From positions 558,001 to 622,000 of the forward strand of contig NIVC01000027.1 in the NCBI GenBank assembly GCA_002269645.1: DNA of 64,000 nt. Reading direction: 5' to 3'. How positions within the stretch are numbered: position 1 is the stretch's first letter; every line of letters begins with the position of its first letter. The notes beneath the pieces were generated by a model. It searched no databases. It saw only the letters and a list, made by a program, of their open reading frames with translations, and had not been told where the DNA came from. Source of the DNA: Macrostomum lignano. Taxonomy: Eukaryota. This document shows, one piece after another, positions 13,991-53,900 of the stretch. The position numbers and the translations under genes were made by a program.

Positions 13991-14004
13991 CTGCATGGGA
14001 GAAC

Positions 14005-16013: not shown

Positions 16014-20752
<4,739 letters not shown>

Positions 20753-22320: not shown

Positions 22321-23108
22321 TGAGGGGATTATAAAAGGTGTAGCAGTGAAGCTGCAGGTTAAAAAGAGATTACATAAGAGGCGGCTCCTTGAAGAGTGAC
22401 TGACACAAGTCGTTCCCCAAGAGACGATGGTGAGACGTGAGTGCATGTTGAGAGAGCAAAGCAATATTGCAGTTAAATGCAGACTAATTTCCCAAAAGCA
22501 AACAGCGTGTGAGAGAGAGTGTGAACGAGAGAGTGAAAATTGCTTTTCACAAAAGAAGTAGCTCGTAACAAGCAATAGAAAACCAACCCAGAGGCTAAAA
22601 AAGGGGATTGGAGAAACACTTGGCAGATCGGGCAGTCATTCATCAACTTCATGCAGCCTTTGACTTCAGCAATTGAAGGGCTGGCAAACCGCCTCGCTTT
22701 TCTACTGGCTTGAGGATCAAAGGAAATGCGTAATTAGAAACCAGCGAACACACATGTGGTGCACAGCTAGCGTAATAGCCTGTATACAATGGGAATTGAA
22801 GCAGCCAGTATACGAACTATCTTCTAATTACGAGCGTACTTTAGTAGATAAATTAATTATAAAGATTAGAAACAAGAAAAGTAACTTTATTGCTAATATT
22901 ACCAATTAATTAGTCAATGCAACAACGTCGTATAAAAAAGTTATATTTATTTGTACATATTCCAGCTGCTACTTATGGAGACTACTAACAGTAGGCTTGC
23001 ATGCAATTTACTTTAGAAAGTACAAAAAGAAGATTAAAGGAACAATTATTATACAATAGTATTAACAAGGTGATACTTAAATTTTACTAATAGGACGCTT
23101 CTCTCCAG

Positions 23109-23885
23109 GTGGATTATCGGGACGATTCTCTCACAGTGAATTATCGGGGCGATTCTCCCACAATGGATTATCGAGGCGATTATCTCAGAGTGGATTATCG
23201 GGGCGATTATCTCAGAGTGGATTATCGGGGCGATTATCTCACAGTGGATTATCGGGGCGATTCTCTCTCAGTGGATTATCGAGGCGATTATCTCAGAGTG
23301 GATTATCGGGGCGATTATCTCACAGTGGATTATCGGGGCGATTCTCTCTCAGTGGATTATCGAGGCGATTATCTCAGAGTGGATTATCGGGGCGATTATC
23401 TCAGTGGATTATCGGGGCGATTCTCTCTCAGTGGATTATCGGGGCGAGTCTCTTACAGGGGATTATCGGGGACGGGGAGATTCTCTCACAGTGGATTATC
23501 GGGGACGGGGAGATTTTCTCACAGTGGATTATCGGGGACGGGGAGATTCTCTCACAGTGGATTATCGGGGACGGGGAGATTCTCTCACAGTGGATTATCG
23601 GGGACGGGGAGATTCTCTCACAGTGGATTATCGGGGCGATTATCTCACAGTGGATTATCGGGGCGATTATCTCACAGTGGATTATCGGGGCGATTATCTC
23701 ACAGTGGATTATCGGGGCGATTATCTCACAGTGGATTATCGGGGCGATTATCTCACAGTGGATTATCGGGGCGATTATCTAACAGTGGATTATCGGGGCG
23801 ATTATCTCACAGTGGATTATCGGGGCGATCATCTCACAGTAGATTATCGGGGCGATTATCTCACAGTGGATTATCGGGGCGATTC
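23109..23885. repeat. 27-bp minisatellite (GTGGATTATCGGGGCGATTATCTCACA), just 3' of the MED23 stop
   Basis: Visible tandem units. Confidence 0.95.
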
Positions 23886-23929
23886 TCCCTAAGTCACCGG
23901 GAGCCAGTCTTCAGACTGAGCTTTTAGAC

Positions 23930-24280
23930 TCAGTTTTCAGACTGAGCGGGAAAGTTAGGCGCATCGGCCGGTCCGTCAGGCTGGTGACCCGGCGCGATGG
24001 ACCGTAGTCGGCTCTGCATGGAAGGGCTCAACCGCTCGATGACACTGGAGGCGACTCGACGAACCCCGTCGCCGACAAACATGTACTTGATGTGATAGAA
24101 ATAGTCGGCTAGGGCGTCCTGGTGCTCAAGACGGCCGGAGCAGGCGGCGTCCACCTCAGCCAGACAGTGGTAGAGCTCGGCCACCAGCTCGTTCTGCACT
24201 GAATTGCAGGCCCGGAGCAGATCGGCGAATAGGGGGCCGATGAGGTGGCAGGACAGCAGCAGCTGGGCCTCGCAGCGGAC
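23930..24280 (-). CDS. MED23: Mediator subunit 23, exon 14 (last)
   Basis: Acceptor cccgcag|GTC. EAQLLLSCHLIGP...DYFYHIKYMFVGDGVRR..IERLSPSMQSRLRSI matches the MED23 C-terminus (FLYHMKYMFTGDSVK..LKPALKLRLRFI). Confidence 0.93.
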   Translation of the reverse strand, partial: VRCEAQLLLSCHLIGPLFADLLRACNSVQNELVAELYHCLAEVDAACSGRLEHQDALADYFYHIKYMFVGDGVRRVASSVIERLSPSMQSRLRSIAPGHQPDGPADAPNFPAQSEN

Positions 24281-24309
24281 CTGCGGGTTTTTGGTTGGGG
24301 ATTGGTGGC

Positions 24310-25040
24310 AGGTGAATATGGGATTCTGGGATTATTGGGGTATGGGATATGGGATTCTGAGGGTATGGAATCTGGGATTCTGAGGGTATGGGATTCTTGG
24401 GGTACGGGATCTGGGATTCTGAGGGTATGGGATTCTTGGGGTACGGGATCTGGGATTCTGAGGGTATGGGATTCTTGGGGTACAGGATCTGGGATTCTGA
24501 GGGTATGGGATTGTTGGGGTACGGGATCTGGAATTCTGAGGGTTATGGGATTCTTGGGGTACGGGATCTGGGATTCTGAGGGTATGGGATCTGGAGATCT
24601 GGGATTCAGGGTCTGGGATTCCTGGGGTACGAGATCTGGGATTCTGAGGGTTATGGGATTCTTGGGGTATGGAATCTGGGATTCTGAGGTTATGGGATTC
24701 TTGGGGTACGAGATCTGGGATTCTGAGGGTATGGGATTCTTGGGGTATGGAATCTGGGATTCTGAGGGTATGGGATTCTTGGGGTACGAGATCTGGGATT
24801 CTGAGGGTATGGGATTCTTGGGGTATGGAATCTGGGATTCTGAGGGTATGGGATTCTTGGGGTACGAGATCTGGGATTCTGAGGGTATGGGATTCTTGGG
24901 GTATGGAATCTGGGATTCTGAGGTTATGGGATTCTTGGGGTACGGGATCTGGGATTCTGAGGGTATGGGATTCTTGGGGTACGGGATCTGGGATTCTGAG
25001 GGTATGGGATTCTTAGGGTACGGGGTTTTTGATTCTGGGA
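24310..25040. repeat. 39-bp minisatellite in MED23 intron 13
   Basis: GGATTCTGAGGGTATGGGATTCTTGGGGTACGGGATCTG units. Confidence 0.93.
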
Positions 25041-25090
25041 TTTAAATCGTAGGATCTAACAGTTAAAAATATGACAGTTACGGGAGTCAC

Positions 25091-25840: not shown

Positions 25841-25864
25841 CACTATCTATCCCAAAGCACCAAC

Positions 25865-26809
25865 CTGGCAGGCATCTGAGCCAGCAGTAGTCCAGCGCTT
25901 TGCCAATCCAATTTGTCAACTTCGTCCTCATCAGCATCCTCAGACTCTTCGCCACCACCTTCGTCGTCTTCCTCGCCGTCGCCGCCATCGTCGGCATCAA
26001 GAAACGCGTCCTGCTCAGCCTCCAATCTGGCCTTCTTCGCTGCAGCGCCGCCATCACTCTGCCTATTGGAATGCGGCTTGGACTTCGACGACAGAATGAA
26101 GCCAGAGGACAACCCGGCAGTTCTTGGCGGCATCACCGGAGCCGGCAGGTCAACCGGGCACAGCAGCAGCTGCAAGGCGCAGCAGTTCACCGCATGGGAG
26201 CAGCTTGAAGGCCACTCGTGACCGAACCAGTCCAGCTGAGGGAAGCCCCGCCGGCCGTGGCTGCTCAGGGCGAGCGACAGGCGGTTCAGCGCCGCCTCAG
26301 GCGGGCCGATGCAGCTGAGCCAATCGGAGGAGCTGGCCTGAGCAGCTGGGGCCGGCAGGCTGGGAGAGGCCAGCAGGGATTTGAAGAACGGCAGGCAGTC
26401 AGACGGCAGGTAGGCCCCATCAGCGGCAGCCTCCATGCGAGGCGCTAAAAGTGCAGCGGCTAGGTAGAGCCGGAGAGGCGCTGGCGGGTCGTAAACAGAC
26501 AGCAGGCTGATCAGACAGGTGCCAGGCGCTGGCATATGGCGCAGGAATGGCGCCAGAGTGGCGCTCAACAAGGCGCAAGAGTCTGGCGGCTGCAGTTGAA
26601 CCAGCCTAGCAAGTGCCGTGTCCATCAGCAGGGCAACGCGGATGGCGGCATGGGAGTACAGACTGGCTGAGCTGCTGCTGCCGCCTGGGGTGTCGTCATA
26701 GACTTGGCGCAGCTGCGACACCAGCGCTGACAGGCTGCCGTTGGCGCCACCGCTTGGCGGGAAGCTGCGGGCGGTTGGGAGCAGAAGGGGGGGTTGAGCG
26801 GGTTGCAAT
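25865..26809 (-). CDS. MED23: MED23 exon 12
   Basis: gatgacag|A ... AG|GTTGGT, phase 2 to 2. FPQLDWFGHEWPSSCSHAVNCCALQLL aligns with FPNCDWRFNEFPNPAAHALHVTCVELM. Confidence 0.87.
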
Positions 26810-26959
26810 CTGTCATCAAGTCAGCCTGAAGTCTTTGATTTATGATAAGGTTACATGTTATTAGGCTAGGCTAATGACCTTATAGACTGCTAGGGTCAAA
26901 TTGGCGTCATATTAGCATGCAATCATTATCAGCTTAGAGATCTAATCAACTAGATATGT

Positions 26960-27260
26960 TTAGGGTCATTAGGGTTGATTAGGGTCATGAGATATCAGAT
27001 TAGGGTCATGAGATATCAGATTAGGGTCATGAGATATTAGATTAGGGTCATGAGATATTAGATTAGGGTCATGAGATATTAGATTAGGGTCATGAGGTAT
27101 CATTTAAGGTCATGAGGTATCATTTAGGGTCATGAGGTATCATTTAGGGTCATGAGGTATCATTTAGGGTCATGAGGTATCAGTTAGGGTCATGATGTAT
27201 CATTTAGGGTCATGAGGTATCATTCAAGGTCATGGGGTAACATTTAGGGTCATGAGGTAT
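26960..27260. repeat. 20-bp minisatellite (TAGGGTCATGAGGTATCATT) in MED23 intron 11
   Basis: Visible tandem units. Confidence 0.9.
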
Positions 27261-27330
27261 CAGCTTAGCTGGATAAGCATCAGCTTGGTCATGAGCTATC
27301 TGAGCAAGCTCATGCCAGCAGTAGAGCTAC

Positions 27331-27878
27331 CTGTTGAGCACAGGCACGAGGCCAGCCATAGGGCTGTTAGGAGTGTCAGCCGACAGCAGATGCCGCAGAA
27401 CTCGAAATGCAGCCAACTCCAGGCGACGCTCAGCAAAAGGCCGCATCAGCAGCACCAGCAGCAGCCGGTGCAACGGGAACAGCCGGTGGGTGTACACCAG
27501 ACTAGTCACGTGATGCAGAGCCGAAACCTCGGCATTGTCGGCCGCGCTAGCGACTTCCCTGGTGAGCAGGTCGCAGAAGATGCGCAGATGCGGCAGGGCG
27601 CCCTTTGGCCCGAGGCTCTCCTGGACTCGAGCGAACAGCTGGGCCGCTGGAAGGTCGCCGCCGCGCTCCCGCAGGCAGCTGAGCGCCACCCAGTACAGGC
27701 AGCCAGCTGAGGGGTCGCTTAGCTGGGCCTCATCGCACTGGCCCTCCTGCAGGATGCGCTGGCTCAGGCGGGTGGCCAGCTCGGCTGAGCCGGTCAGCTG
27801 ATGCGACTGACGCTCAGCTGAGGGCACCGAGATTCTGTCCGGGCTGGCCAACAGGCGCGGCTGCATGGAGATCGGCAC
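27331..27878 (-). CDS. MED23: MED23 exon 11
   Basis: ccccag|GTG ... AG|GTAGCT, phase 0 to 2. LGPKGALPHLRIFCDLL and FPLHRLLLVLLMR align with IGARALVAHVRTFADFL and VTLDRLILCLAMR. Confidence 0.88.
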
Positions 27879-27909
27879 CTGGGGTGGGTGGGAATGAGGA
27901 ATGTGAAGG

Positions 27910-28582
27910 TTATGGGATTTGGGACTATGAAATATGGGATTTGAGGCTATGGGATATGGGATTTGAGGCTATGGGATATGGGATTTGAGGCTATGGGATA
28001 TGGGATTTGAGGCTATGTGATATGGGATTTGAGGCTATGGGATATGGGATTTGAGGCTATGGGATATGGGATTTGAGGCTATGTGATATGGGATTTGAGG
28101 CTATGGGATATGGGATTTGAGGCTATGGGATATGGGATTTGAGGCTATGGGATATGGGATTTGAGGCTATGGGATATGGGATTTGAGGCTATGTGATATG
28201 GGATTTGAGGCTATGGGATATGGGATTTGAGGCTATGGGATATGGGATTTGAGGCTATGGGATATAGGATTAGAGGCTATGGGATATGGGATTTGAGGCT
28301 ATGGGATATGGGATTTGAGGCTATGGGATATGGGATTTGAAGCTATGGGATATGGGATTTAAGGTTATGGGATATGGGATTGAGGCTATGGGATATGGGA
28401 TTTGAGGCTATGTGATATATGATTTCAGGTTATGGGATATGGGATTTGAGGCTATAGGATATAAGATTTAAGGTTATGGGATATTGGATTGAGGCTATGG
28501 GATATGGGATTTGAGGCTATGTGATATATAATTTCAGGTTATGTGATATATGATTTCAGGTTATGGTACATGGGATTTGAGG
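27910..28582. repeat. 22-bp minisatellite (GGGATATGGGATTTGAGGCTAT) in MED23 intron 10
   Basis: Visible tandem units. Confidence 0.94.
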
Positions 28583-28835
28583 CATGTGTCCTTGAGCAAG
28601 ACACTGTTAACTCTGCACTGCTTCAGTTCACCCAGCTGTAGAATGGGTGCCATGGGTGCCCTGACCCTCCAGTCCTTAGACTGAACAGTCGTATGCAGCC
28701 TTCAGTTACGCCGCGCAATCGAAGTTATCAATTATACTGGGACTTATTACTGGGATTAAGCACATAATGATTTACGAGTACTATTGGTTAGCAAGAGATG
28801 AATACTTATAGATGCTATAAAAGTTCATCTTGTAC

Positions 28836-29021
28836 CAGGCATGCAGCCGAGCACTTCTGAAACAGCGGCTGAACAAAGTCGGATAGCAGCAGGCCGTCAG
28901 GATCTGCTTGCTGGTGAATCAGCTGGTGATTGATCTGCAGCAGTAGGTATTTATTCAGCTCCTCCTGGTCGCTGCCGCAGATCCAAGCCACGTACAGCTT
29001 CTTCACGTGGTTGTTGGTGAC
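28836..29021 (-). CDS. MED23: MED23 exon 10
   Basis: ccccag|GTC ... CTG|GTACAA, phase 0 to 0. QEELNKYLLL aligns with SEELNRALIL. The donor is weaker than the others. Confidence 0.8.
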
Positions 29022-29144
29022 CTGGGGGTGGGGGCGGAGTTGTACGGTTTAGTGGACTGCATTGTAACCCATTGCCTACCTGTCTGTTAATGGTAACTAG
29101 TAGTCTATCTACTACTACCCATTGTGCCCCTAATATAACCATAT

Positions 29145-29725
29145 TTATCCCTCATCTACCCTTTATATCCCTCATCTACCGATTACATCCCTAATCTACC
29201 AATTATACTCCTAATCTACCTATTATAGCTTTAATCTACCTATTATATCTTTAATCTACCTATTATATCTTTAATCTACCCATTATATCCCTAATCTACC
29301 CATTATATCCCTAATCTACCCATTATATCCCTAATCTACCCATTATATCCCTAATCTACTCATTTATATCTCTAATCTACTCATTATATCCCTACCCTAA
29401 TCTACTCATTATATCCCTAATCTACTCATTATTATCCCTAATCTACTCATTATATCCCTAATCTACCCATTATATCCCTAATCTACTCATTATTATCCCT
29501 AATCTACCCATTATATCATATAATCTACCCATTATATCATATAATCTACCCATTATATCATATAATCTACACATTATAGCCTTTATCTATCCAATATATC
29601 AATAATATAGCCATTATATCCTTAATCTACCCATTATTTAGCAAATCTACTCATGATATACCAAATCTACCCATTATATCCCCAATCTACCCATTCTATA
29701 CCAAATCTACCCATTATATCCCTAA
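29145..29725. repeat. 20-bp minisatellite (ATCCCTAATCTACCCATTAT) in MED23 intron 9
   Basis: Visible tandem units. Confidence 0.92.
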
Positions 29726-29773
29726 TCCATCAACTATCTAACCCATCCACCCAACTCCCAGCCCACAACCAAC

Positions 29774-30220
29774 CTGCAGAGCGGGAGTGAGCAAGGCCTG
29801 AGCCTGCCTATACAAGCACAGCTCAGTGTCCAGCCCCAGCCGGTTAGCCTTGGCCAGAGTGACCAGGTTCTGCAGTAACAGGTGCCTCTGCATGGGTTCA
29901 ACGCTGTTCAAGTGATAGGTAGCTAGCTCGAACACAAAGGCCAACACTCTGCTTCCACCAGTGTTGCCAGCCTTAGTGAAGGCCTCCGTGAGTACAGATT
30001 TAGGCTGCAAATTCAAATCGTGATGCATGAGCACAGTGATCCTGGCGTACGTGTCCAGCACCACGGGACTGTCGGCATGGGTTGACAGCAGGTTGTACAG
30101 CAGACTGTTGATAGCCAGCAGTGACATTGTGGCTAACTGGCGTAGGCTGGAGTAAGATGGAGCAATGGCGTCTGATTGTTTGAGCGCTTCTACCAGCTTG
30201 GAGTTGAGCGGGCTGACCAC
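29774..30220 (-). CDS. MED23: MED23 exon 9
   Basis: cccgcag|GTG ... CAG|GTTGGT, phase 0 to 0. VLDTYARI and FELATYHLNSVEPMQRHLLL align with LVETYSRL and LEMFSYRMHHIQPHYRVQLL. Confidence 0.88.
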
Positions 30221-30414
30221 CTGCGGGTCATAGGGTCATGGTCTATGATTGTGCGATCATACACTTTTCGGAACTTTGGATGAATGATTTTGGAATCATG
30301 CGATATTAACATAGGGTCATGGAATAACGGAGATCAGTAAGACTTCAAAAAATGCGATTGAGAATGAGAATAGGACCATGTGACCCTGCAGAATATAATT
30401 ATGGGATCATAAGA

Positions 30415-30640
30415 GAATGTGATCATAGTCATAGAGAATGGGATCATAGGGTCATAGAGAATGGAATCATAGGGTCATAGAGAATGGAATCATAGGGTCA
30501 TAGAGAATGGAATCATAGGGTCATAGAGAATGGAATCATAGGGTCATAGAGAATGTGATAATATTGTCATAGAGAATGGGATCATAGGGTCATAAAGAAT
30601 GGGATCTAAGTCATAGAGAATGGAATCATAGTCATAGGGA
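30415..30640. repeat. 23-bp minisatellite (GTCATAGAGAATGGAATCATAGG) in MED23 intron 8
   Basis: Visible tandem units. Confidence 0.9.
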
Positions 30641-30709
30641 ATATGATCATAGTCACACGCACGTAATGGGATTAGGGGATCAATGGGAAAACATCCCAGC
30701 GCTACAAAC

Positions 30710-31092
30710 CTGAGGCTGACCCAGAGGCGCATAAGCATTATAAACGTAGGCGAACCAGCGAAACTCTTCGGGATCCAGCGGGACTTGATAGCTGGGAGAC
30801 TGCGACATCTGCTGGAACTTTTCCATCAGCTCTGACATCATTGGCTGCATCGGAGGCGGCAGGGCTCGAGGCAGCCGCTCGTTGGGCGCGCTGGACTTCT
30901 GGGTGAGGCTGAACCAAACCAGCAGGGTGGTGTCAAATGCCGGCGCCCCGCCTGGAAACAGCGCGTCAAGGATGCGCAGGATGGGAGCAAAATCTACGAG
31001 GGGATTTTTGTTTTGAGCGCCCAAGAAGTTGAACAGCATCCAAGCGATGTGCGGCGCCGAACGGCTGAGCGAATCTCGTCGATCTTGCAGGC
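30710..31092 (-). CDS. MED23: MED23 exon 8
   Basis: aaaccag|GC ... CAG|GTTTGT, phase 1 to 0. HIAWMLFNFLGAQNKNPLVDFAPILRILDALFP aligns with HLMWVLLQFISGSIQKNALADFLPVMKLFDLLYP. Confidence 0.9.
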
Positions 31093-31246
31093 CTGGTTTT
31101 GGTTGAAGGGAGATGAATATTAGCGAAATGTTTGCATTGCTACTCAGTCAGTAGAATAGTTCGGGTATGTTGCAATATCTATCTGAGCCAGGTGAGTGTC
31201 TCAGTTGACGATATGCGAGATTAGGGAAAATAGCTGGCATACTTTG

Positions 31247-31555
31247 GGATCTGGGAGGCTGGCCCAGCAACTGAGGATCTGGGAGGCTGGCCCAGCAACT
31301 GAGGATCTGGGAGGCTGGCCCAGCAACTGAGGATCTGGGAGGCTGGCCCAGCAACTGAGGATCTGGGAGGCTGGCCCAGCAACTGAGGATCTGGGAGGCT
31401 TGCCTAGCAACTGAGGATCTGGGAGGCTGGCCCAGCAACTGACACTCTGGGAGGCTGGCCCAGCAACTGACACTCTGGGAGGCTGGCCCAGCAACTGACA
31501 CTCTGGGAGGCTGGCCCAGCAACTGACACTCTGGGAGGCTGGCCCAGAGCAACTG
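31247..31555. repeat. 28-bp minisatellite (CTGGGAGGCTGGCCCAGCAACTGAGGAT) in MED23 intron 7
   Basis: Visible tandem units abutting the exon 7 donor. Confidence 0.93.
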
Positions 31556-31565
31556 AGCTCAATAC

Positions 31566-32030
31566 CTTCCAAAACTCCAAGACACATCTCGGGAAAGCGC
31601 ACGAGATGCAGCCGACAAAGATGGATGCTGTACAGTCCCAGATGACGCCACATCATGTCTGCCCAAGCCATCTCGCTATCGGATTCGCAGGCCTCGGTCT
31701 CGTCGGCAGTCCACAGAATGGTGTCAATCAAGCATCGCTCCAGAAACAGACACCTGGAGATCTTGCTAGCCCTTGGTGCCGTGTGCAGAGACAGCAGACT
31801 CAACAACAGGTCCATGCTGCCCTGCTGCGTGAGCACAGCCCTGATGAGGCTGGTATGCGGCCTCTGCAAGCACCTGGCATAGGGCAGGGGGCCCTTCAAA
31901 TCCAGGGCGCCAGTCGAGGCCAGCAGATTCACGGGCACATTGGTGACGCTGCTGGGCTGCGGATGCTGCAGAATGGCCGGCGGCATGCAGTAGTTGCCAA
32001 CCCCGGCTATGGGAACGATTTGACGGATCA
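31566..32030 (-). CDS. MED23: MED23 exon 7
   Basis: ccccgcag|TG ... G|GTATTG, phase 1 to 1. LKGPLPY..CLQRPHTSLIRAVLTQ aligns with LKGLLPYDKDLFEPQTALLRYVLEQ. Confidence 0.9.
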
Positions 32031-32101
32031 CTGCGGGGGCGGAGCAGGCGGGTGAGTCATCTGCTGCTCTGATCCAGCAGGAATGATTAGCAGCACCTTA
32101 C

Positions 32102-32171
32102 CTCTGTGCGAGAACATGTTGGCAACGTTTTTGAAGCTATTGCGAAATGTTTCCAGTTTGGTCTTTAAAAT
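32102..32171 (-). CDS. MED23: MED23 exon 6
   Basis: ctccctcag|ATT ... G|GTAAGG, phase 0 to 1. ILKTKLETFRNSFKNVANMFSHR fills the gap corresponding to LVSDFVDTFRPTARINSI. Confidence 0.82.
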
Positions 32172-33760
32172 CTGAGGGAGGAAAGTTATTGAGGATCTGC
32201 TGCTGGACTGATTGTGAATTTATCGATCTGTCTGTATAAAATATAGACACCCGTACGACTCTACTACGACTAGGACTACTACTACAACTTTTCTACTATT
32301 AGTCTACTACTGAAATACAGTGCCCAGTTGCCTGTAAACAGGGTCTGAGCAGACAGCAGTCTGTGAACAGGGTCTGAGCAGACAGCAGTCTGTGAACAGG
32401 GTCTGAGCAGACAGCAGCCTGTGAACAGGGTCTGAGCAGACAGCAGTCTGTGAACAGACGCCGCCAACTGCGACTCGTGACTTGTCTGGCTACATTAATA
32501 ACGTCTACCAGTACGACTCTACTAAGACTACGATTACTACTGAGGCAGAATCCTTATAAACTATTTATATTACTTATAACAGTAGTTAAACCCGAATTTT
32601 AATTACAGCCAATCAGAAATTTTCTTCCCATTCGTTTAAATTCCCTAAACAATTCAATTTCTTTTGTTATAATTTTAGTAATTGTTAAAATGCGTCCCAC
32701 CTTCCCCAAATTTTGTGTATAAAAGGAATCAGGTTAACGCTAAAAAATATAACCTCGGCTCTCGTTCTCAATATTTGCTTTTAACTATTCTTGCGAGAAG
32801 CTTTTAGTGAAACAAATCTAAATTTGGCTAAGACTTATCTCGCCATTTCTTTAATAGGGAAACTTGAGGTCGTGGAGACCCAAAACTAGGGATCGGAATA
32901 GGGAAACTTGAGGTCGTGGAGACCCAAAAATTAGGAATCTGACTAGAGGTCGTAAAGACCCTGAGTTGGGAGAGGTTTAAGGTCGTGCAGACCCTAAGAA
33001 AGCCGTGTAGGCTAAGCCATAGGCATTAGGCGTTAGGAGATTAGGCATTAGGGGAATAAATTAGCTACCGCTGGACACCCTTGATCCTCGGAAAACGCCA
33101 GACTTTTGGACTGAATTAGGAAATTAGACAGTGTCTTACCGCTCGGGCACTACACGCTATCACAAGGTTTCTAGGAAATCGTGAGTTCGAAATTTTCTGG
33201 GAAAAACTCTTAGTTTATGACAGCCAATACTACTGAAAGTAGGCAGCTTAGCGATAATTCGTAGACAGAGTCATTAGGCCTACGACAACTTGGTGGCATT
33301 AGTAGGATTTAAGTAAGGAGCCAGAAGAACTACGACAACTTGGTGGCTTTACGGTGGGATTGCAGCTAGGAACTATTAGGTCTACAACACTACGTTTGTG
33401 ACCAGATGCCGTTAACTGCTACTTGTGGTCGGTCTGGCCTACTCAAACCAATTTAATCTCGTATGTGCATTAAATTATTTACACTTCGTTAACCAGTCAG
33501 AGTTCTCAGTGCTCTATAACAATTAATTATTTTTCTAAATAACTTATTTGTAGTATTTTTCAAGCTGGTTAGTCACATTTCTAAGCTGTAATGCCTTAAC
33601 CAATCAGAGTGCTTTAATTCCCTTTTTGTATTAGCTATATGTGTACCGTGCATTTTTACACAACGTTGCTCAGTGCACCCAGCCAAAGCTGGTACATAAA
33701 TAATAATGATATGAGGAAATAACTTCACAACTAAAATAATTGCTACTTTATATACCCTCA

Positions 33761-33808
33761 AAATAAACCCTGACGAAGGCCATGATTTGGCCGAAATATC
33801 GGTTATTT
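33761..33808 (+). ncRNA. Minimal type-I hammerhead ribozyme motif 1
   Basis: Stem I AAATA(A)ACC/GGTTATTT; core CTGACGA; stem II GGCCA/TGGCC; GAAA; palindromic stem III ATAT; predicted cleavage after AUC (33800). Confidence 0.8.
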
Positions 33809-34182
33809 CGAAGTTTGACACCTGACAACTTCAATCTTCCGTGTGCGTGGTTGCGGCTTCAGAGTGTCTTATACTCGTAGATATCTCTTCTATTTATCTA
33901 TTTATCGATCTTTCGATCTATATATCCATCTATCTTTTTATCTATCTATGGATCAAATATACTTCATTAACTACTAAACGGCAGTGCCCAGTTGTCTGTG
34001 TCCAGGGACTGAGCAGACGGTGATCTGTGTCCAGACGCCGCCAACTGATACTTGTGGCTTGCCAGGATAAACAATTAAATTACTGCATATGCATCAGTAT
34101 GTAATTATTTACCCTTCTTTAACCAGTTTAAGTGAGGTCTTAGTGCTCTGTAACAATTTAATTTACTTTAAAAACATTAGAC

Positions 34183-34370
34183 ACCAGTGAATGCGGCGGA
34201 AAGATCCTCCCAACGCTGCGCATTGAGGGACAGGAATTAACCTACGACCCGACACCCACGTTCCTTGGCCTTCGCCTAGACGACCAACTGACTTTCGCCA
34301 ACCATATAGAGGCAGTGCGCAAAAGATGGCCACCAGGCGGCGTTGTCTGCAAAGTCTCGTTGGCAAATCC
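34183..34370 (+). mobile_element. Fragment of a non-LTR retrotransposon RT (late RT/thumb), Ingi/I-like
   Basis: LRIEGQELTYDPTPTFLGLRLDDQLTFANHIEAVRK then, after a frameshift, MATRRRCLQSLVGKS. Confidence 0.7.
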
Positions 34371-34582
34371 CAGGAAAATACTTCATCTTATTAAAGAGGA
34401 ACCAATTTTTTGGAAGAATCCGGTGATGAAGAAGTCTTGCCTACAGAGTTTTTGGTGGTGGCTGACTCAGCCCCTAATGCTGCTGCTTCTGGGCTTCCAG
34501 GCGGCCCTGCTTCTGCTGATTCTGGGCTTTCCGGCACTCCCGCTGCTGCTGCTGCCGAGGGCGCCCCTGCTGGTGTTGCTAT

Positions 34583-37420
34583 CACTGTAAACTCCAGGGG
34601 TCCACGTGGAGTTCGTGGCCAAAAATGGCTGATTTGGAGTCCGCCCTCAATAAGCTAGAGCGCAATCCTCGGCTTGGAACGGACCTTATGTTAAAGGCGA
34701 ATTTCGTCAACAAGTTTTTAACTTACATCATCAATGACGTCTTTAACAATTATAAAAGCCGGCAAGATCCGTACCTTTATGGAAAAGAGCTAAATGACAC
34801 AAACATCTCCATCGTTTCTATGTACCCAGGAATGCGAGACGGGTCGAGCGATGGGACTGTTTTTTGGTGGCAGAAAATTCCCCGAATATTCAAAGAAATA
34901 CGGTGAAAATTCCAGGAGTTCTGCAGCCTGATAGTCAAAACAATGCGCCAAAAATTTGGACGCAAAAAGCGTGCTGCTAATTCCAGCAACTCCGGCATTT
35001 CCGCGTCGTGCATGGCGGAAAATGATGAGGATAGTGACGAAGAAAACGTAGTCCCATCTGCAAATAAGCGCCGAAGAATTGCTACCATCGTAGATGCGCC
35101 CGATGATGACGAAAACGTAGTACAAGCAAAGCGCCAGCAAGTCAACTGTGAGGATGCTGAGAGTACGACTACATCGACAAGCAAGCTTGTCAAAAGCGTC
35201 ATTTTTGGAGATGTGGAATGCGTTCCTGAAAGTCACGAAGTTGACCGAATTAGGTTGAACAAAAATTTCCACACAATGGAAATCGAAGAGGTATTAAGCA
35301 ATATGAAAAGTCTATTTAGTGTGCGAGTCGTGCGTTGCCAAGAGAGAACTGTTGAAGAGGAGGCTGAATTGTATAAGCCATTATCACTGCCACGTGTTCA
35401 GTTGCAAGAGGCATTTCTTATGATTCAGTTGTATAACTCTAGACGCAAGGCTGACTATGTGTTTCCTCGAACACCTGAGGATATTGAACAAAATGTATGC
35501 GGTGCACTCCGGCATGTGTGGCAAGAACGAGATGCAATGAAGCGGTACTTGTATTGCTAGCCGTTTCTGAACGCTGAATGTGATAACGACGACACCATTC
35601 TAATAAACGGCCTTTGCTTGCACCTTGATCGATTAAGGATTGACCCTGCGAAACTTTTTTGATACTGAGCTGCTAATTCAAATTCTGAAGGAAGGCGAAA
35701 GTTAGCGCGGCATTTCGGTAAACGGTGCAAAATTTGGGTACGATTGTACCAAGGATACGGTGGTCGCAATTGCAATCTGTTCCGTATCGTTTACCTGCAG
35801 CATGTGCCCTATCTGGAAGCCTTCCTCGAGACATATCAGAAGTATTGTGAAAACTACCACGACGTGATGCTGTGTCCCGCGAACCTGCCCAGTCGCTGAT
35901 TGCTACACTTTGTTAAAAAAACTTTTAACTTAGCATTCGACATTTTACTCGTATAATGAAAGTCTATGTTCCCCCTTAAGCACCTACTAAGCTTAAGGTT
36001 TATTAATGTCTCCACTAATAAAAAACCTTTTAAACTTACCTTAATACGTTTAACCCAATTACCGGCTACCTTAATAAACAAATGACAATTTTTGTTAATA
36101 CAGAATTAATACTGCATAGCTATTTTTATACTGTTTATTCTTATATCAAGCTGAAGCTTGTAAATGGTATGTCTGCAACACTGGATCATGTATGACATTA
36201 TGTAATATAAACAATATTTTTTATAAATTATTGTTTTTTGTAATGTTAGCTTCTAATTTCCGTGTAGTTCCATGTAATTTTTGCATACTTTTTGACGTTG
36301 ACGTAATAATTGAAATAGTTTCATGCGTGTGTATGTATGTTTTATTAGTATTTCACATTGCGAAAAAATATTGGAAACACCAAGTAATGAACGTGCATGT
36401 CAATATACACTGCATGTGATAATTATAATACGATAGGGAGCATTCATATGACAGACAGACATTAGTGTTGTAATTAATGGTTACAAATTCAAGACTTGCA
36501 TATCGTTTAATTTTCTTCGTGTCAGTGATTCTTTCATATTATAATACAAATATGATTGTTGTTCTCGATTGTGTGCGTTAACTTTTTATTAAAAAGGATT
36601 TGCATCAGTTGATCTAACTTCTAAGCGTGCGAAAGCCAATAAATCTGCATTTAGCTGGTCAACCTTGCAAACGAAATTACGCTCGTACATGCGGACCCTT
36701 TTTACATTCGGACCTTAGGGTCCGTATATAGCGACGCCGCGGACCCTAACATACGGACCCCTACTGGACCTTTTTTCGGACCTTTAGGGTCCGTATATAG
36801 CGACGCTGCGGACCCTAACATACGGACCCCTACTGGACCTTTTTTCGGACCTATACATTCGGACCTTTAGGGTCCGTATATAGCGACGCTGCGGACCCTA
36901 ACATACGGACCCCTGCCGGACCTTTTTTCGGACATTTAGGGTCCGTATATAGCGACGCTGCGGACCCTAACATACGGACCCCTGTCGGACCTTTTTTCGG
37001 ACATTTAGGGTCCGTATATAGCGACGCCGCGGACCCTAACATACGGACCCCTACTGGACCTTTTTTCGGATCCATACATTCGGACATTTAGGGTCCGTAT
37101 ATAGCGACGCCGCGGACCCTAACATACCGACCCCTACTTGACCTTTTTTCGGACCTATACATTCGGACCTTTAGGGTCCGTATATAGCGACGCCGCGGAC
37201 CCTAACATACCGACCCCTACTTGACCTTTTTTCGGACCTATATACATTCGGACCTTTAGGGTCCGTATTTAGCGACGCCGCGGACCCTAACATACGGACC
37301 CCTACTGGACCTTTTTCGGATCCATACATTCGGACCTTTAGGGTCCGTATATAGCGACGCCGCGGACCCTAACATACGGACCCCTACTGGACCTTTTTTG
37401 GATCCCTGGAGTTTACAGTG
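34583..37420 (+). mobile_element. CACTG-ended (EnSpm/CACTA-like) non-autonomous DNA transposon with a decayed internal ORF
   Basis: 21-bp TIRs CACTGTAAACTCCAGGGGTCC and GGATCCCTGGAGTTTACAGTG (1 mismatch). Internal frame 34625-35560 is broken by one TGA. Subterminal repeat array at the right end. TSD not clear (AT vs TA). Confidence 0.7.
36693..37400. repeat. Self-complementary subterminal tandem array, about 68-82 bp unit (GGGTCCGTAT...ATACGGACCC)
   Basis: Visible tandem units ending at the right TIR. Confidence 0.92.
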
Positions 37421-37624
37421 TACAATTGAGCCGGTGGAGCCAATTCCTGATTGAATCAAGGAGTCTGATCAGACTATCGTGGCGGCAAATATTCTACCCG
37501 GCGTGTCGTTTTTCCTACCGCCTGTCAGCGGTGCCGGGTATGCAGTGACTTAGAAGAACATATATATTTTATTTCCCACTAACAATATAAATTCGTTGCA
37601 TTTTGTCATTAATAATTATACTAA

Positions 37625-37665
37625 GAACCCTGACGAAGGCCAATCCACAGCCGAAGTATCGGTTC
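37625..37665 (+). ncRNA. Minimal type-I hammerhead motif 2 (GAAG variant)
   Basis: Stem I GAACC/GGTTC; CTGACGA; stem II GGC/GCC; GAAG; AUC site at 37660. Confidence 0.65.
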
Positions 37666-38188
37666 ACTAAATTGATTTATATTAGTTATGACCTCTGCGT
37701 CTCTCTTTGAGATTTCTTGGCTAACTTAGTTAGAGCTGCTACTGTGTGAGTGGTCTTTTTCAAACGTCTATTTATCTATCAATGAATCGAATATGCTTTA
37801 TCAACTACTGAACGGCACTGCCCAGTTGTCTGTGTCCAGGGACTGAGCAGACGGTGGTCTACTCGTATGTCCAGACGCCGCCAACTGATAGCCTGATAGC
37901 CTAAGTGAGGTCTCAGTGCTCTATAACAATTTAATTTACTTTTTTTAAAACGTATTCATTATACCTTTCAAGCTGTTTAGTCACACTTTAATAATCGTTA
38001 AATGTGACATTATATAGCTCCTAATGCCTATACTTTTTGTGTGAGGCATTAGCCGCAAAGCTCTAACCAATCAGTGTGCTTTAATACACTTTTTACACAA
38101 CACTGCTTAGTGCACCCGGACAAAGCTGGTGTATAAATAGCCTGGTTATGATGCAATAACTTCACTGTCAAAATTTTAATATTTTTCT

Positions 38189-38227
38189 CAACCTGATGAA
38201 GGCCACGATTTTGCCGAAATATTGGTC
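38189..38227 (+). ncRNA. Minimal type-I hammerhead motif 3 (degenerate stem I)
   Basis: CTGATGA; stem II GGC/GCC; GAAA; ATAT; AUU site at 38223. Confidence 0.6.
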
Positions 38228-38669
38228 ATTTTGAATAAAAGTTCGACTTCAGACGTGCTTAGTTTTTTTTTCAAGTGAGCGGATTGCAATTTCAAACTGC
38301 TTTATTCATATTTATCGATAGAATAGATATCGATAGCTGGTGAAACCCGCAAATCGCAGCATCAGCAGCAGTCAAACCGTAGGAGACCTGATACCCAGTA
38401 CCATCTTCGGAGGGATGGGCGCCGGTCAAGGTCGCAAGACAGAGGCTCTGAGAATGTCACCATCATTGTACTCGTACTCGTAAACGTCGAAGTGCGAAAG
38501 GTGCGATGACAGTAGACAAGGCCCGGCTGGTTCGGTTGGTCAAGAAACTCTTCCCGATCTGTTCATCACTATGAAAACTGTCAGACCATCCCAAAATAAC
38601 TGCAAAGCAAAACAGAACAACTCAAGACTTTTATTCGACCGGCCATGCCAACCAAGAGGACTGAGGAGA

Positions 38670-38969
38670 ACGTCCGATTGAACGCAGACACCTGAGATAT
38701 GAGCACCCAGGACGCAATGCAAAGTCATTGTGAAGAATGAATCTTTTGAACGACTTCCACAATTAAGGGAAGCGTTCAAGGGAGTCGACAGCGAAAGACG
38801 GGTTCAACTGTGACTCGACGGTGTTACGGTAAGTTACGAATTGTGTTTGAAAAAAATGGAACTTGGAAATCCTCGGCTGTTGGCTGCGTACACCAGATCG
38901 AACTCTATAAAAGACATTCTGTGCCCATCCAAACTCCCTGCACTGACTGCACGTGATCAAGCCGAGTAG
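38670..38969 (+). mobile_element. Decayed 3' end of a Penelope-like element ORF
   Basis: HLRYEHPG...MELGNPRLLAAYTRSNSIKDILCPSKL-stop resembles the PLE post-RT motif AYxRxxNLxDxLxPSKL. It contains internal stops/frameshifts and is followed by hammerhead 4. Confidence 0.5.
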
Positions 38970-39103
38970 GTTATCAGTTCATCTCTCATCGCTTCGCTCC
39001 CATCACTTCTAACAATTTATTGATTTTAATGTCCCCAGCAACTCTCTTTGAGTGCTCATATTTTATAAACCATTGCTTTACTGTTTCTAGCAAAATAAAT
39101 TTT

Positions 39104-39145
39104 CGGACCCTGACGAAAGCTACGATTTGGCCGAAAGTTTGGTCG
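39104..39145 (+). ncRNA. Minimal type-I hammerhead motif 4
   Basis: Stem I GACC/GGTC; CTGACGA; stem II GCTA/TGGC; GAAA; predicted site after 39140. Confidence 0.65.
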
Positions 39146-39269
39146 TCTACTTTATCAACAAATCAAATTGTACCTTCTCTCACTGTGTGTGCGGTTTTTT
39201 AATTGATTTCGTCTATCTATCTATCTATAAATCTATCTATCTATCTATAAATCAGCCCAGCAGCCTCAC

Positions 39270-39374
39270 CGGATGCAGATTGGTCTGCTCAGCCGGGGGC
39301 AGTTTAGTCACTTCGTGCAGAGCAAAATAGGCGGGCATCAAGCAAAGCGAGCGATCCATCAGGGTGGTGATGAG
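39270..39374 (-). CDS. MED23: MED23 exon 5
   Basis: cccgcag|CTC ... CCG|GTGAGG, phase 0 to 0. LMDRSLCLMPAYFALHEV aligns with ILERNACLLPAYFAVTEI. Confidence 0.9.
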
Positions 39375-39599
39375 CTGCGGGTTCAGTGGGTGTCACAGAC
39401 AGTTATAAAGCAATAATTTCGAGTTGTAGCTCGTAAGATAAATATTTGATTTAAAAGAAATCGACAGTAAGCAACTTTATTACACACTGGTAAACTTCTA
39501 AATCTTACTAAAGCTTCAATAAATTCCATAGAAATTCTCTACTTATTTCTTGTATTTATTAGCCTCAATTGTCGGATAAAAAAACAACTTGTACAAGTT

Positions 39600-39790
39600 G
39601 AAAGCGTCATTTGTAGGATTTCAAAGGCGCCATTTGTTGAATTTTAAAAGCGCCATTTGTGAGATGTAAAAGGCGCCATTTGTGAGAATTAAAAAACAAA
39701 ATTTGTAGGATTTAAAAAGCGTCATTTGTAGGCTTTAAAAAGTGCCATTTGTTGAATTTAAAAAGCGGCATTTGTGAAATTTAAAAAGCG
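39600..39790. repeat. Repeat of about 22 bp (AAAAGCGCCATTTGT core) in MED23 intron 4
   Basis: About 8 visible degenerate units. Confidence 0.85.
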
Positions 39791-39823
39791 TTGTTAAACA
39801 AACAAAACAATATTGCAACAAAC

Positions 39824-40022
39824 CTTGAACGCAGGAACAAAGACTTTGTCTTCACCTTCGCTGAAAGTCTTGTACAAGCCCAACACTTTGCCAAACAGAT
39901 CCCTGCAGCCTTTGTAGTCCATCTGTCTGACCAGACGATCCATCACTGTTACGGCCTCTTTGAAGAAGGCCGGATTTCGCATGATATCGTCGTGAGAGAC
40001 CAACAACTCGTCACAGATGTGC
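39824..40022 (-). CDS. MED23: MED23 exon 4
   Basis: ctactcag|G ... AAG|GTTTGT, phase 2 to 0. MDYKGCRDL aligns with VDYKGVRDL. Confidence 0.9.
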
Positions 40023-40224
40023 CTGAGTAGGGGGTGATTTTCGTTCGGGGCGACACTTTGAAACTGAGTCTTATAAACTGGGCAAAACGAACCGAATAAC
40101 TCAGCCTTAATGAATCCATGAACAGCTAACTCATTAATAATGTGAAAGTGTGAGAGAGCATCTTAATAATAGATGTTGTACACCATTTATTGTAACCAAG
40201 CAAACATTACTGAAAGGCACTAAC

Positions 40225-40400
40225 TTGGCAGACAGTAACCCGCTGTTAATAAGCGGATAAAATACTTCCAGACAGCTGACTAACACGCGATCAAGGAACT
40301 CCTCCATGACGTGGCTGATGTACAGTTTCACTGCTCGTTTGCGGTCCTCCTGAAAGTTGAGAATGTACTTTTTTGAAGACGAAATATCTTTTTTCAGGAC
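40225..40400 (-). CDS. MED23: MED23 exon 3 (acceptor position uncertain)
   Basis: Donor AA|GTTAGT, phase 2. LINSGLLSAK aligns with AVETGLLPPR. The only phase-0 acceptor I found nearby is gttgaag|GTC, which has a poor pyrimidine tract. Confidence 0.72.
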
Positions 40401-40409
40401 CTTCAACGG

Positions 40410-41130
40410 TTTGCTAAACTTTGTCCCTGAACCTTTAGTGGACTGCTCAGCCTTGTCCCTGAACCTTTAGTGGACTGCTAACCCTTGTTGCTGAACCTTT
40501 AGTGGACTGCTAACCCTTGTTGCTGAACCTTTAGTGGACTGCTAATTCTTGTCCCTGAACCTTCAGTAGCCTATTCAGTCTTGCCCCTGAACCTTCAGTA
40601 GCCTACTCAGTCTTGTCCCTGAACCTTCAGCAGCCTACTCAGTCTTGTCCCTGAACCTTCAGTAGCCTATTCAGTCTTGCCCCTGAACCTTCAGTAGCCT
40701 ACTCAGTCTTGTCCCTGAACCTTCAGCAGCCTACTCAGTCTTGTCCCTGAACCTTCAGTAGCCTACTCAGTCTTGCCCCTGAACCTTCAGTAGCCTATTC
40801 AGTCTTGCCCCTGAACCTTCAGTAGCCTACTCAGTCTTGTCCTTGAACCTTTAGTAGCCTACTCAGTCTTGTCCTTGAACCTTCAGTGGCCTATACAGTC
40901 TTGTTCCTGAACCTTCAGCGGTCTGTTAACTCTTGTCCCTGAGCTTCCAGTGGTTGCTAACTCTTGTCCCTGAACCTTCAGTGTCTGTTAACTCTTGTCC
41001 CTGAGCTTCCAGTGGTTGCTAACTCTTGTCCCTGAACCTTCAGTGTCTGTTAACTCTTGTCCCTGAGCTTCCAGTGGTTGCTAACTCTCGTCCCTGAACC
41101 TTGTCACTGAACCTCCCGTGAACTGCTAAC
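40410..41130. repeat. 32-bp minisatellite (CTTGTCCCTGAACCTTCAGTAGCCTACTCAGT) in MED23 intron 2
   Basis: Visible tandem units. The 32-bp period excludes an in-frame coding repeat. Confidence 0.93.
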
Positions 41131-52075: not shown

Positions 52076-52341
52076 TCGACACACGGAGAAACAATCCTTA
52101 CTTAAACTCTTTTCTATATTACATGTACTTAAAGAAATCTGTTGACTCTGTATCCAGTATTCTAAACTGAGCACATTATTTTCTCTCGATAGTCACCTTG
52201 TGCTGAATTTGTATTTCATAACGACTTGTAAATTTCCCCAGCCGTTTCTGTGCCAATCGTCGAACCTACTGCAACCTATGAAAACATTATTATAGGAGCT
52301 CGAAGAGCCAATAATATTGGCTAAGAAAATACAAAAATACA

Positions 52342-53900
52342 ACTGACTGACTGACTGACTGACTGACTGACTGACTGACTGACTGACTGACTGACTGACT
52401 GACTGACTGACTGACTTGAGTGAGTGGGTGACTGACTGACTGACTGACTGACTGACTGACTGACTGACTGACTGACTGACTGACTGACTGACTGACTGAC
52501 TTGAGTGAGTGGGTGACTGACTGACTGACTGACTTGAGTGAGTGGATGACTGACTGACTGACTGACTGACTGACTGACTGACTGACTGACTTGAGCGAGT
52601 GGGTGACTGACTGACTGACTGACTGACTGACTGACTGACTGACTGACTGACTGACTGACTGACTTGAGTGAGTGGGTGACTGACTGACTGACTGACTGAC
52701 TGACTGACTGACTGACTGACTGACTGACTGACTTGAGTGAGTGGGTGACTGACTGACTGACTGACTGACTGACTGACTGACTGACTGACTGACTGACTGA
52801 CTGACTGACTGACTTGAGTGAGTGGGTGACTGACTGACTGACTGACTGACTGACTGACTGACTGACTGACTGACTGACTGACTGACTGACTGACTTGAGT
52901 GAGTGGATGACTGACTGACTGACTGACTGACTGACTGACTGACTGACTTGAGTGAGTGGGTGACTGACTGACTGACTGACTGACTGACTTGAGTGAGTGG
53001 GTGACTGACTGACTGACTGACTGACTGACTGACTGACTGACTGACTGACTGTCTGACTGACTGACTGACTTGAGTGAGTGGGTGACTGACTGACTGACTG
53101 ACTGACTGACTGACTGACTGACTGACTGACTGACTGACTGACTGACTTGAGTGAGTGGGTGACTGACTGACTGACTGACTGACTGACTGACTGACTGACT
53201 GACTGACTGACTTGAGTGAGTGGGTGACTGACTGACTGACTGACTGACTGACTGACTGACTGACTGACTGACTGACTGACTGACTGACTGACTGACTGAC
53301 TGACTGACTGACTGACTGACTGACTGACTGACTGACTGACTGACTGACTGACTGACTGACTGACTGACTGACTGACTGACTGACTGACTGACTGACTGAC
53401 TGACTGACTGACTGACTGACTGACTGACTGACTGACTGACTGACTGACTGACTGACTGACTGACTGACTTGAGTGAGTGGGTGACTGACTGACTGACTGA
53501 CTGACTGACTGACTGACTGACTGACTGACTGACTGACTGACTGACTGACTGACTGACTGACTGACTGACTGACTGACTGACTGACTGACTGACTGACTGA
53601 CTGACTGACTGACTGACTGACTGACTGACTGACTGACTGACTGACTGACTGACTGACTGACTGACTGACTGACTGACTGACTTGAGTGAGTGGGTGACTG
53701 ACTGACTGACTGACTGACTGACTGACTGACTGACTGACTGACTGACTGACTGACTGACTGACTGACTGACTGACTGACTGACTGACTGACTGACTGACTG
53801 ACTGACTGACTGACTGACTGACTGACTGACTGACTGACTGACTGACTGACTGACTGACTGACTGACCGACTGACTGACTGACTGACTGACTGACTGACTG
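52342..53900. repeat. (GACT)n microsatellite punctuated by TGAGTGAGTGGGT units
   Basis: Visible. Confidence 0.98.

Follow-up and report, generated by a model that had tools for sequence, protein, structure and literature searches.

Minimal hammerhead ribozymes (min-HHRs) located in the pseudo-LTRs (pLTRs) of PLEs cleave poorly in vitro (PMC4209133). The HHR resides in the pLTRs of PLEs, and in Penelope so does the transcription start (PMC8557442); in an Anolis PLE the HHR lies at the junction between the pLTR and the ORF (PMC11167929). In vitro work on the Anolis PLE indicated that cleavage is dispensable for insertion. Animal retrozymes, which have been proposed to be derivatives of pLTRs, have consensus lengths of 51 to 972 bp (bioRxiv 10.64898/2026.07.22.740005), and canonical metazoan retrozymes possess a type I HHR in which helix I is 6 bp, helix II is 4 bp, and loop 1 contacts loop 2 (PMC7229834). 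HHR-bearing derivatives of PLEs have been recorded across the animals.

The 64,000 nucleotides of Macrostomum lignano DNA analyzed here (the window) contain four hammerhead motifs on the + strand, which were designated HH1 to HH4. The initial annotation described a unit delimited by HHRs with predicted cleavage after 37660 and 38223, and both motifs were recovered at those positions. HH2 (37618 to 37672), the left boundary of the unit, has the core motif CTGACGAAGGCC..GCCGAAGTATC (in full, CTGACGAAGGCCAATCCACAGCCGAAGTATC) at 37630 to 37660. HH3 (38181 to 38235), the right boundary, has the core motif CTGATGAAGGCC..GCCGAAATATT (in full, CTGATGAAGGCCACGATTTTGCCGAAATATT) at 38193 to 38223. The distance between the two predicted cleavage sites is 563 nt, and this is the single uninterrupted HHR-to-HHR unit at the locus. 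A third HHR of the array, HH1 (33758 to 33812), has its core motif at 33770 to 33800. HH4 (39098 to 39152), found at 39110 in a repeat search of the window, was absent from the initial annotation. The spacings between successive HHRs, from HH1 to HH4, are 3860, 563, and 917 nt.

The 31-nt pattern shared by the HHRs had three matches in the 64 kb, compared to 0.00 in 100 dinucleotide shuffles. When a covariance model was built on the four HHRs and run against 114 kb of M. lignano DNA, exactly those four were recovered. The HHR is also the sole segment common to all four HHR-bearing copies of the repeat, including the last one (copy C), the flanks of which can no longer be aligned. None of the Rfam hammerhead models (Hammerhead_1, Hammerhead_3, Hammerhead_II, HH9, and HH10) matched in the window at the gathering threshold, and none matched at an E value of ≤10 in positions 32500 to 39500 or in an 86-nt slice around HH1. 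This silence is understandable because the motifs do not have a helix III, and as a consequence the assignment as HHRs rests on published descriptor features of min-HHRs rather than on a curated model. Matches to the Rfam families STnc150, mir-310, and sR38 (E values, 1.6 to 8.7) were attributed to chance. An exact-pattern scan for the HHR of this repeat family gave 0 matches in metagenome and viral contigs.

HH1 consists of CUGACGA, a bulged A, a GGCC/GGCC helix II, GAAA, UAU, and C17, with predicted cleavage after 33800 and a helix I of GGUU/AACC with an extension. Every conserved core position (C3-U4-G5-A6-N7-G8-A9, G12-A13-A14, A15.1-U16.1, and H17) is occupied as expected, and the minimum free energy (MFE) fold (-13.9 kcal/mol) is the Y shape of a hammerhead with an unpaired core. 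HH1 also has all of the features described for the min-HHRs of PLEs: one unpaired base separates A9 from G10.1, the closing pair is G10.1-C11.1, helix I is 4 to 5 bp, and the palindromic 15.1-16.1 stretch AUAU takes the place of helix III. On these grounds, the motifs of the locus are assigned as minimal type I HHRs of the kind found in PLE pLTRs, in which a base is predicted to bulge ahead of helix II, helix I is short, and helix III is absent except for the palindromic AUAU. An ATG is located inside loop II of HH1, and the frame that it opens stops after 32 codons.

Each of the other three copies departs from this pattern. HH2, with the core CUGACGA..GAAG, has a G in place of the conserved A15.1 (GAAG where GAAA is required); its helix II is 3 bp with the bulged A kept, and its helix I is 5 bp (GGUUC/GAACC). 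HH2 is 68% identical to HH1 in the repeat family comparison. The core of HH3 (CUGAUGA..GAAA) is intact and its helix II is likewise 3 bp with the bulged A kept, with U17 as the cleavage-site base. Helix I of HH3 is mismatched at 1.2/2.2 and 1.4/2.4, so that two of four pairs remain, and its MFE structure is not a hammerhead. In HH4, which has a GGUC/GACC helix I, the core boxes are present and the G10.1-C11.1 pair is lost (A10.1). The palindromic AUAU is found in HH1 and HH3; the corresponding stretches of HH2 (GUAU) and HH4 (AGUU, forming loop 3) are not palindromic. A compensatory change in helix I replaces the U-A pair of HH1 and HH2 with C-G in HH4, but with only four sequences the observed covariation score was reached by shuffles in 82 of 500 runs. 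Judged by core, helices, and predicted fold, HH1 appears to be the only intact, consensus-grade hammerhead at the locus, and both of the ribozymes that bound the 563-nt unit deviate from the functional consensus in ways expected to impair them.

The HHRs belong to repeat units that are all on the + strand and confined to 32.2 to 39.3 kb of the window. The oldest and most diverged unit, copy Z (about 32222 to 32830), retains a TCTA-like remnant, the CAGTGCCCAGTTG.. block in the form of a 29-nt repeat with 4.3 copies, the GACGCCGCCAACTG block, and promoter-like boxes (CCAATCAG at 32609 and TATAAAAG at about 32712); an HHR was not detected in copy Z with the covariance model. Copy A1 (33397 to 33955) comprises a promoter-like module, HH1, a spacer, and a TCTA microsatellite (33889 to 33949), and is followed in tandem register by the partial unit A2 (33955 to 34169), which ends at about 34170. 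Positions 33397 to 33528 are 70.8% identical to positions 34026 to 34163, which gives a period of about 630 nt (repeat spacings, 634 and 629).

Copy B (37661 to 38223) is the 563-nt unit. It starts with a spacer, a degenerate TCTA tract, a CACTGCCCAGTTG..GAGCAGAC block, GACGCCGCCAACTG, CAGTGCTCTATAACAAT, and CAAGCTGTTTAGTCACA; it continues with CCAATCAG (38067), GTGCACCC..AAAGCTGG, TATAAATA (38132), and AATAACTTCAC (38155), and it ends with the 5' part of HH3. The proposal that the unit is non-coding agrees with our results, as copy B gave no coding signal. In a search for other copies of the family by way of spurious ORFs, a chimeric protein query joining the six translated frames of the unit had no match. 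The fold of copy B (-141.8 kcal/mol; z = -3.09 versus shuffles) is predicted to be only moderately more stable than that of shuffled sequences. Copy C (39098 to 39262) consists of HH4, a spacer, and a (TCTA)n tract (39204 to 39262).

The blocks listed for the 563-nt unit had been reported to recur around HH1, and they do so as collinear matches of 72.5 to 95% identity: 37767 to 37890 with 33933 to 34050 (86%), 37902 to 37942 with 34129 to 34169 (95%), 37907 to 37985 with 33500 to 33577 (80%), 38051 to 38085 with 33584 to 33618 (83%), and 38090 to 38235 with 33653 to 33812 (72.5%). The description of the family as tandem and circularly permuted is borne out as well, with the same circular order of blocks in the copies and periods of about 630 and 563 nt. 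Weighted over the aligned blocks, copy A shares about 81% identity with copy B (∼20% divergence). Neither the sequences that precede HH2 and HH4 nor the 870-nt spacer between HH3 and HH4 gave alignment scores above those of shuffles, whether compared with the promoter module or among themselves.

Two insertions of other origin interrupt the array. Positions 34185 to 34390 (+ strand) hold the tail fragment of a LINE-type RT, encoding ..FLGLRLDDQLTFANHIEAV.., which is outside the HHR family. Its product aligns to positions 487 to 526 of ORF2 of a LINE in the same window (E value, 0.018). It was considered as a remnant of a PLE RT and rejected as such; it has the LINE-type tail ..(Y/F)LG..LD..L.F..H.. 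and aligns at that position in the LINE. The second insertion is a 2.8-kb element (34583 to 37420), unrelated to the HHR family, with 22-nt inverted repeats at its ends, a 205-amino-acid ORF, and a 69/83-nt minisatellite. The 205-amino-acid ORF had no family or structure match, and a sequence look-up returned no record for it. A match of this element to the parvovirus family NS1_C of Pfam was an artefact, the sum of weak hits on the translation of the 69/83-nt minisatellite.

A CCAAT box at about 38067 and TATAAATA at about 38132 had been noted ahead of HH3, with similar motifs ahead of HH1, and both pairs are present, the latter as CCAATCAG at 33600 and CATAAATA at 33695. The CCAAT box CCAATCAG has three sites on the + strand of the window (32609, 33600, and 38067), all inside copies of the family. 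A TATA box follows each of them after 65 to 104 nt (TATAAAAG at about 32712, CATAAATA at 33695, and TATAAATA at 38132), and an identical AATAACTTCAC is found about 30 nt after the TATA box in copies A (33718) and B (38155). All four HHRs have a TATAAA/ATAAAT match at a distance of 43 to 74 nt on their upstream side, compared to a background of 1.28 per kb; for HH2 this motif is the TATA-like ATATAAAT, 44 nt away. AATAACTTCAC may be regarded as initiator-like, as it stands where an initiator would be expected, and the conserved CCAATCAG, TATAAATA, and AATAACTTCAC upstream of the HHR would fit a promoter of the pLTR type. With a putative start ∼30 to 40 nt before the ribozyme, transcription would begin in one unit and read into the next, which is the logic of the pseudo-LTRs of PLEs.

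The entire array lies antisense within an intron of MED23 (about 32208 to 39273, - strand), between two small exons (32108 to 32207 and 39274 to 39392, - strand) that were recognized by a spliced-peptide match. The conceptual spliced MED23 peptide aligned with positions 90 to 358 of Pfam Med23 in one stretch (106 bits). When the two small exons were taken by themselves, they aligned with positions 166 to 221 and reached the curated cut-off (25.6 bits). The MED23 exons used as a query for the paralogous introns had no match. Because the four HHRs are antisense to MED23, they are represented in the host pre-mRNA only by inactive complements. No consequence of this locus for the host is evident. 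The window has a single long RT ORF, which belongs to a LINE with RNase H (17742 to 20627). Two paralogous loci are 97 to 98% identical to the window; both end about 10 kb short of the array, and neither holds a copy of the family or an HHR. The window is 100% identical to contig NIVC01000027.1 of assembly GCA_002269645.1, at about 558001 to 622000. Elsewhere in the window, a 467-amino-acid ORF (6969 to 8369) is 100% identical to M. lignano BOX15_Mlig028556g3, a nucleotidyltransferase of the TENT5/FAM46 type.

The most probable explanation for these results is that the region is one unit of an old and partly broken head-to-tail array (about 32.2 to 39.3 kb) of a non-coding, PLE-derived repeat, which is pLTR-like and has no ORF, as in the class of non-LTR retrozymes or solo pLTRs. 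The link to PLEs rests on the architecture of the ribozymes together with the literature, in a window that contains no PLE ORF. If an intact family operated in the way its layout suggests, a Pol II-type promoter in each unit (CCAATCAG, TATAAATA, and AATAACTTCAC) would fire about 30 to 40 nt upstream of the hammerhead, and the transcript would continue into the next unit. The minimal type I hammerheads might then pair through the palindromic AUAU, either in dimers or from one unit to the next, with cleavage after C17. Such cleavage would free RNA one unit long, bearing a 5'-OH and a 2',3'-cyclic phosphate at its ends, which could be ligated into a circle or reverse-copied into DNA by a PLE RT/GIY-YIG enzyme encoded elsewhere. 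We infer these steps of transcription, cleavage, circularisation, and mobilisation from motifs and their arrangement. The present locus itself seems to be a fossil, in which a decayed 563-nt unit lies between two ribozymes predicted to be impaired and has diverged ∼20% from the neighbouring copy. The extent of decay can be gauged from the identity of about 81% between copies A and B versus differences of 2 to 3% between the paralogous loci.

One alternative is that the HHR units are the pLTRs of one or more full-length PLEs whose ORF was later deleted or overwritten. The 3860-nt interval between HH1 and HH2 is the size of a PLE, the min-HHR architecture is typical of PLE pLTRs, and in Schistosoma PLE ORFs are flanked by paired HHRs separated by about 3 kb. 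The ATG in loop II of HH1 is also reminiscent of an Anolis PLE in which the ORF starts inside the HHR. However, the frame from that ATG is soon closed, and the interval between HH1 and HH2 is made up of unit A2, the LINE-type RT tail, and the element bounded by inverted repeats with its minisatellite. Furthermore, no RVT (RVT_1) or GIY-YIG domain was matched in any of the 79 stop-to-stop segments of at least 40 amino acids in the MED23 intron, and the intron contains no ORF for an RT, with or without GIY-YIG, flanked by pLTRs, as an autonomous PLE would have. Degradation of a full-length PLE at this site is thus considered unlikely.

It is less probable still that the array arose by repeated target-primed insertion of a SINE-like element into (TCTA)n in a once-small intron, with 5'-truncated copies that share a common 3' part and with no rolling-circle or circular RNA templates. 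PLEs and their relatives do favour microsatellite targets and are often 5' truncated and arranged in partial tandems. A TCTA-type tract follows every HHR after about 60 to 110 nt (33889, 37762, about 38310, and 39204), and TCTA-type tracts occur at both ends of the intron, with the copy Z remnant 14 nt and the (TCTA)n of copy C 11 nt from the splice sites. However, the copies share a homologous spacer, with a GTGTG(N)GTGG motif, between HHR and microsatellite, and homology runs across the microsatellite itself (33933 to 34050 versus 37767 to 37890, 86%), which places the TCTA tract within the unit, with no clear sign that it marks a terminus. Decay has also blurred the boundaries of the copies.

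The initial annotation regarded the 563-nt unit from HH2 to HH3 as a complete monomer, that is, a working retrozyme that would be transcribed, cut at both ends, and circularised to a circRNA of ∼560 nt. This part of the annotation found no support, and we consider the working monomer very improbable. Two HHRs in direct orientation are indeed 563 nt apart without an ORF between them, the size is inside the published consensus range for animal retrozymes (51 to 972 bp), a promoter-like module is present, and the fold is somewhat more stable than that of shuffles. Against this, HH2 has G15.1 and a 3-bp helix II, and HH3 has U17, two mismatches in helix I, and an MFE structure other than a hammerhead. 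The unit's own promoter is downstream of HH2, and RNA spanning both cleavage sites would therefore not be driven by it; all that lies upstream of HH2 is a TATA-like motif that does not align, and then the 2.8-kb foreign element. With the divergence of about 20% from copy A in addition, the 563-nt unit is not likely to be a source of circular RNA.

Chance resemblance, that is, an ordinary local tandem duplication with hammerhead-like boxes and no ribozyme ancestry, might be suggested by the missing Rfam match and by the lack of statistical support for covariation among four sequences, but it is hardly credible for a 31-nt pattern with 0 matches expected by chance, for HH1 with all core positions, four descriptor-independent features of PLE min-HHRs, and the correct MFE fold, and for an HHR that is the one segment shared by all four HHR copies, including copy C.

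Under the preferred reading of the locus as part of an old, PLE-derived array, intact copies might exist elsewhere in M. lignano, and the promoter-then-ribozyme layout, in which the CCAAT box, the TATA box, and the initiator-like block have been kept between copies, would be testable in them. M. lignano is amenable to transgenesis and RNAi. It is conceivable, but rather doubtful, that at other sites in the genome the family has young, active copies and forms a self-contained retrozyme, with its own Pol II promoter (NF-Y-type CCAAT, TATA, and initiator-like block) ∼30 to 40 nt upstream of a dimer-dependent minimal hammerhead. If so, every transcript would decap itself and yield circRNAs of about 560 to 640 nt, and the family would be the first animal retrozyme with a defined promoter, found moreover in a flatworm that is genetically tractable. 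Among the top-ranked literature matches, none combined M. lignano with a hammerhead, a PLE, or a retrozyme, which is a weak sign of novelty at the species level only.

Among known systems, the Sm-alpha SINE-like repeats of Schistosoma are also short, non-coding repeats with a type I hammerhead in a flatworm genome. Sm-alpha elements have a canonical HHR and Pol III-type features. The repeat described here has instead a Pol II-like CCAAT/TATA pair, and A and B boxes were not noticed by eye.

The initial annotation further proposed a relationship to retrozymes and PLEs, and only a part of this proposal can be retained. The architecture of PLE min-HHRs (PMC4209133) is present, but the canonical retrozyme HHR with loop-loop contacts is not. 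Like the non-LTR retrozymes of metazoans (Cervera and De la Pena 2020, PMC7229834; Li et al. 2026, 10.64898/2026.07.22.740005), the family appears to consist of non-coding head-to-tail repeats with a type I HHR, a low GC content, and a unit length within the range of 51 to 972 bp, and the proposed derivation of those retrozymes from PLE pLTRs would apply equally. Classic retrozymes, in contrast, have monomers of about 170 to 400 nt and RNAs with a high degree of self-pairing, whereas the units here are 563 to 640 nt with a moderate fold (z, -3.1). Their HHRs are canonical with contacts between loop 1 and loop 2, whereas those of M. lignano are minimal and have no defined loop 1. The array is also short, diverged, and interrupted compared to those of classic retrozymes. 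A conserved CCAAT/TATA module within the unit is not described in the retrozyme literature that was compared (the words "promoter" and "TATA" are absent from the text of 10.64898/2026.07.22.740005). Strict membership in the canonical retrozyme group fails on the minimal type of the ribozyme and on the modest predicted fold stability of the unit.

Penelope of Drosophila virilis (PMC8557442) and Poseidon PAc of Anolis (PMC11167929) resemble the family in that a promoter or start in the repeat precedes the body, which makes a tandem arrangement necessary for expression, and in that the HHR is located just downstream, at the junction between pLTR and body. They differ in that they encode an RT-GIY-YIG protein, with its start at the HHR or beyond it, whereas here the frame from the loop II ATG of HH1 ends after 32 codons.

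A close comparison can also be made with the min-HHRs of PLEs (Cervera and De la Pena 2014, PMC4209133). Helix II is 4 bp here (3 bp in the decayed copies) compared to 7 to 8 bp in the Schistosoma families (PMC4209133), and there is no nearby PLE ORF. In other respects the two agree: both have the type I topology, the core sequences CUGANGA and GAAA, a base left unpaired ahead of helix II, the G10.1-C11.1 pair, a helix I of 4 to 5 bp (mismatched in HH3), and an ill-defined loop 1. In both, a palindromic 15.1-16.1 stretch stands for helix III, which implies dimeric action, and the copies within one genome are highly heterogeneous and mostly located away from full PLEs.

The MED23 gene, which has large exons and an intron that holds the decayed array of hammerhead repeats, probably Penelope-like-element (PLE)-derived, lay at 25843-40162 on the minus strand, and a 28-nt tandem array (31247-31557) fell within a long open frame (31201-32031) of this region. 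A 425-aa concatenate of the MED23 exons had zero matches in the protein collection searched. Because the query did not retrieve even itself, M. lignano MED23 seems to be absent from that collection.

Within the hammerhead repeat family, the block GTCTGTGTCCAGGGACTGAGCAGAC was conserved between 33983-34019 and 37817-37853, and its ends were inverted (GTCTG...CAGAC). At 86%, it counted as one of the more strongly conserved segments of the unit, second to the CAGTGCTCT..TAACAAT block (95%). In copy Z, the oldest and most diverged unit, the block was amplified into 4.3 copies of a 29-nt repeat (32332-32457).

The array was interrupted by an unrelated 2.8-kb element (34583-37420), a possible non-autonomous DNA transposon bounded by 22-nt inverted repeats (CACTGTAAACTCCAGGGGTCCA). 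The element showed no clean target duplication, and its 205-aa ATG ORF (34943-35560) had no match in Pfam or PDB. The element also contained a 69/83-nt minisatellite (36689-37399). A viral origin of 36686-37400 on the minus strand was rejected, as the match there to the parvovirus Pfam domain NS1_C (25.6 bits, 0 separate stretches) was a spurious repeat artifact of the translated minisatellite units.

Upstream of the array, an apparently intact LINE was located at 16109-20627 on the plus strand, with RVT_1 and RNase H domains in one ORF of 961 aa starting at 17742, preceded by further ORFs at 16337-17508. Alignment comparisons suggest that this LINE inserted recently, because two paralogous loci 97-98% identical to the window (L001 and L003) stopped aligning at 15466 and lacked the LINE.

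Minisatellites repeating every 20-40 nt formed arrays that were unusually dense over the whole window (for example, 5347-6084, 11216-14908, 21473-25045, 40293-41128, 52321-53973, and 62910-63533) and generated long spurious ORFs in all frames. A long array of ∼36-nt period (1-2582) lay upstream of the TENT5 gene, and its length varied among paralogous loci (the window versus L001 and L002, the latter the window's own locus).

Loop II of HH1, the intact minimal type I hammerhead motif, contained an ATG 18 nt upstream of the predicted cut, which opened a frame of 32 codons (MIWPKYRLFRSLTPDNF...) at 33783-33881 on the plus strand; the equivalent triplet in the other three hammerhead copies was ACG or AAT. 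This ATG recalls the Poseidon PLE of Anolis, the ORF of which begins at stem II of its own hammerhead (PMC11167929).
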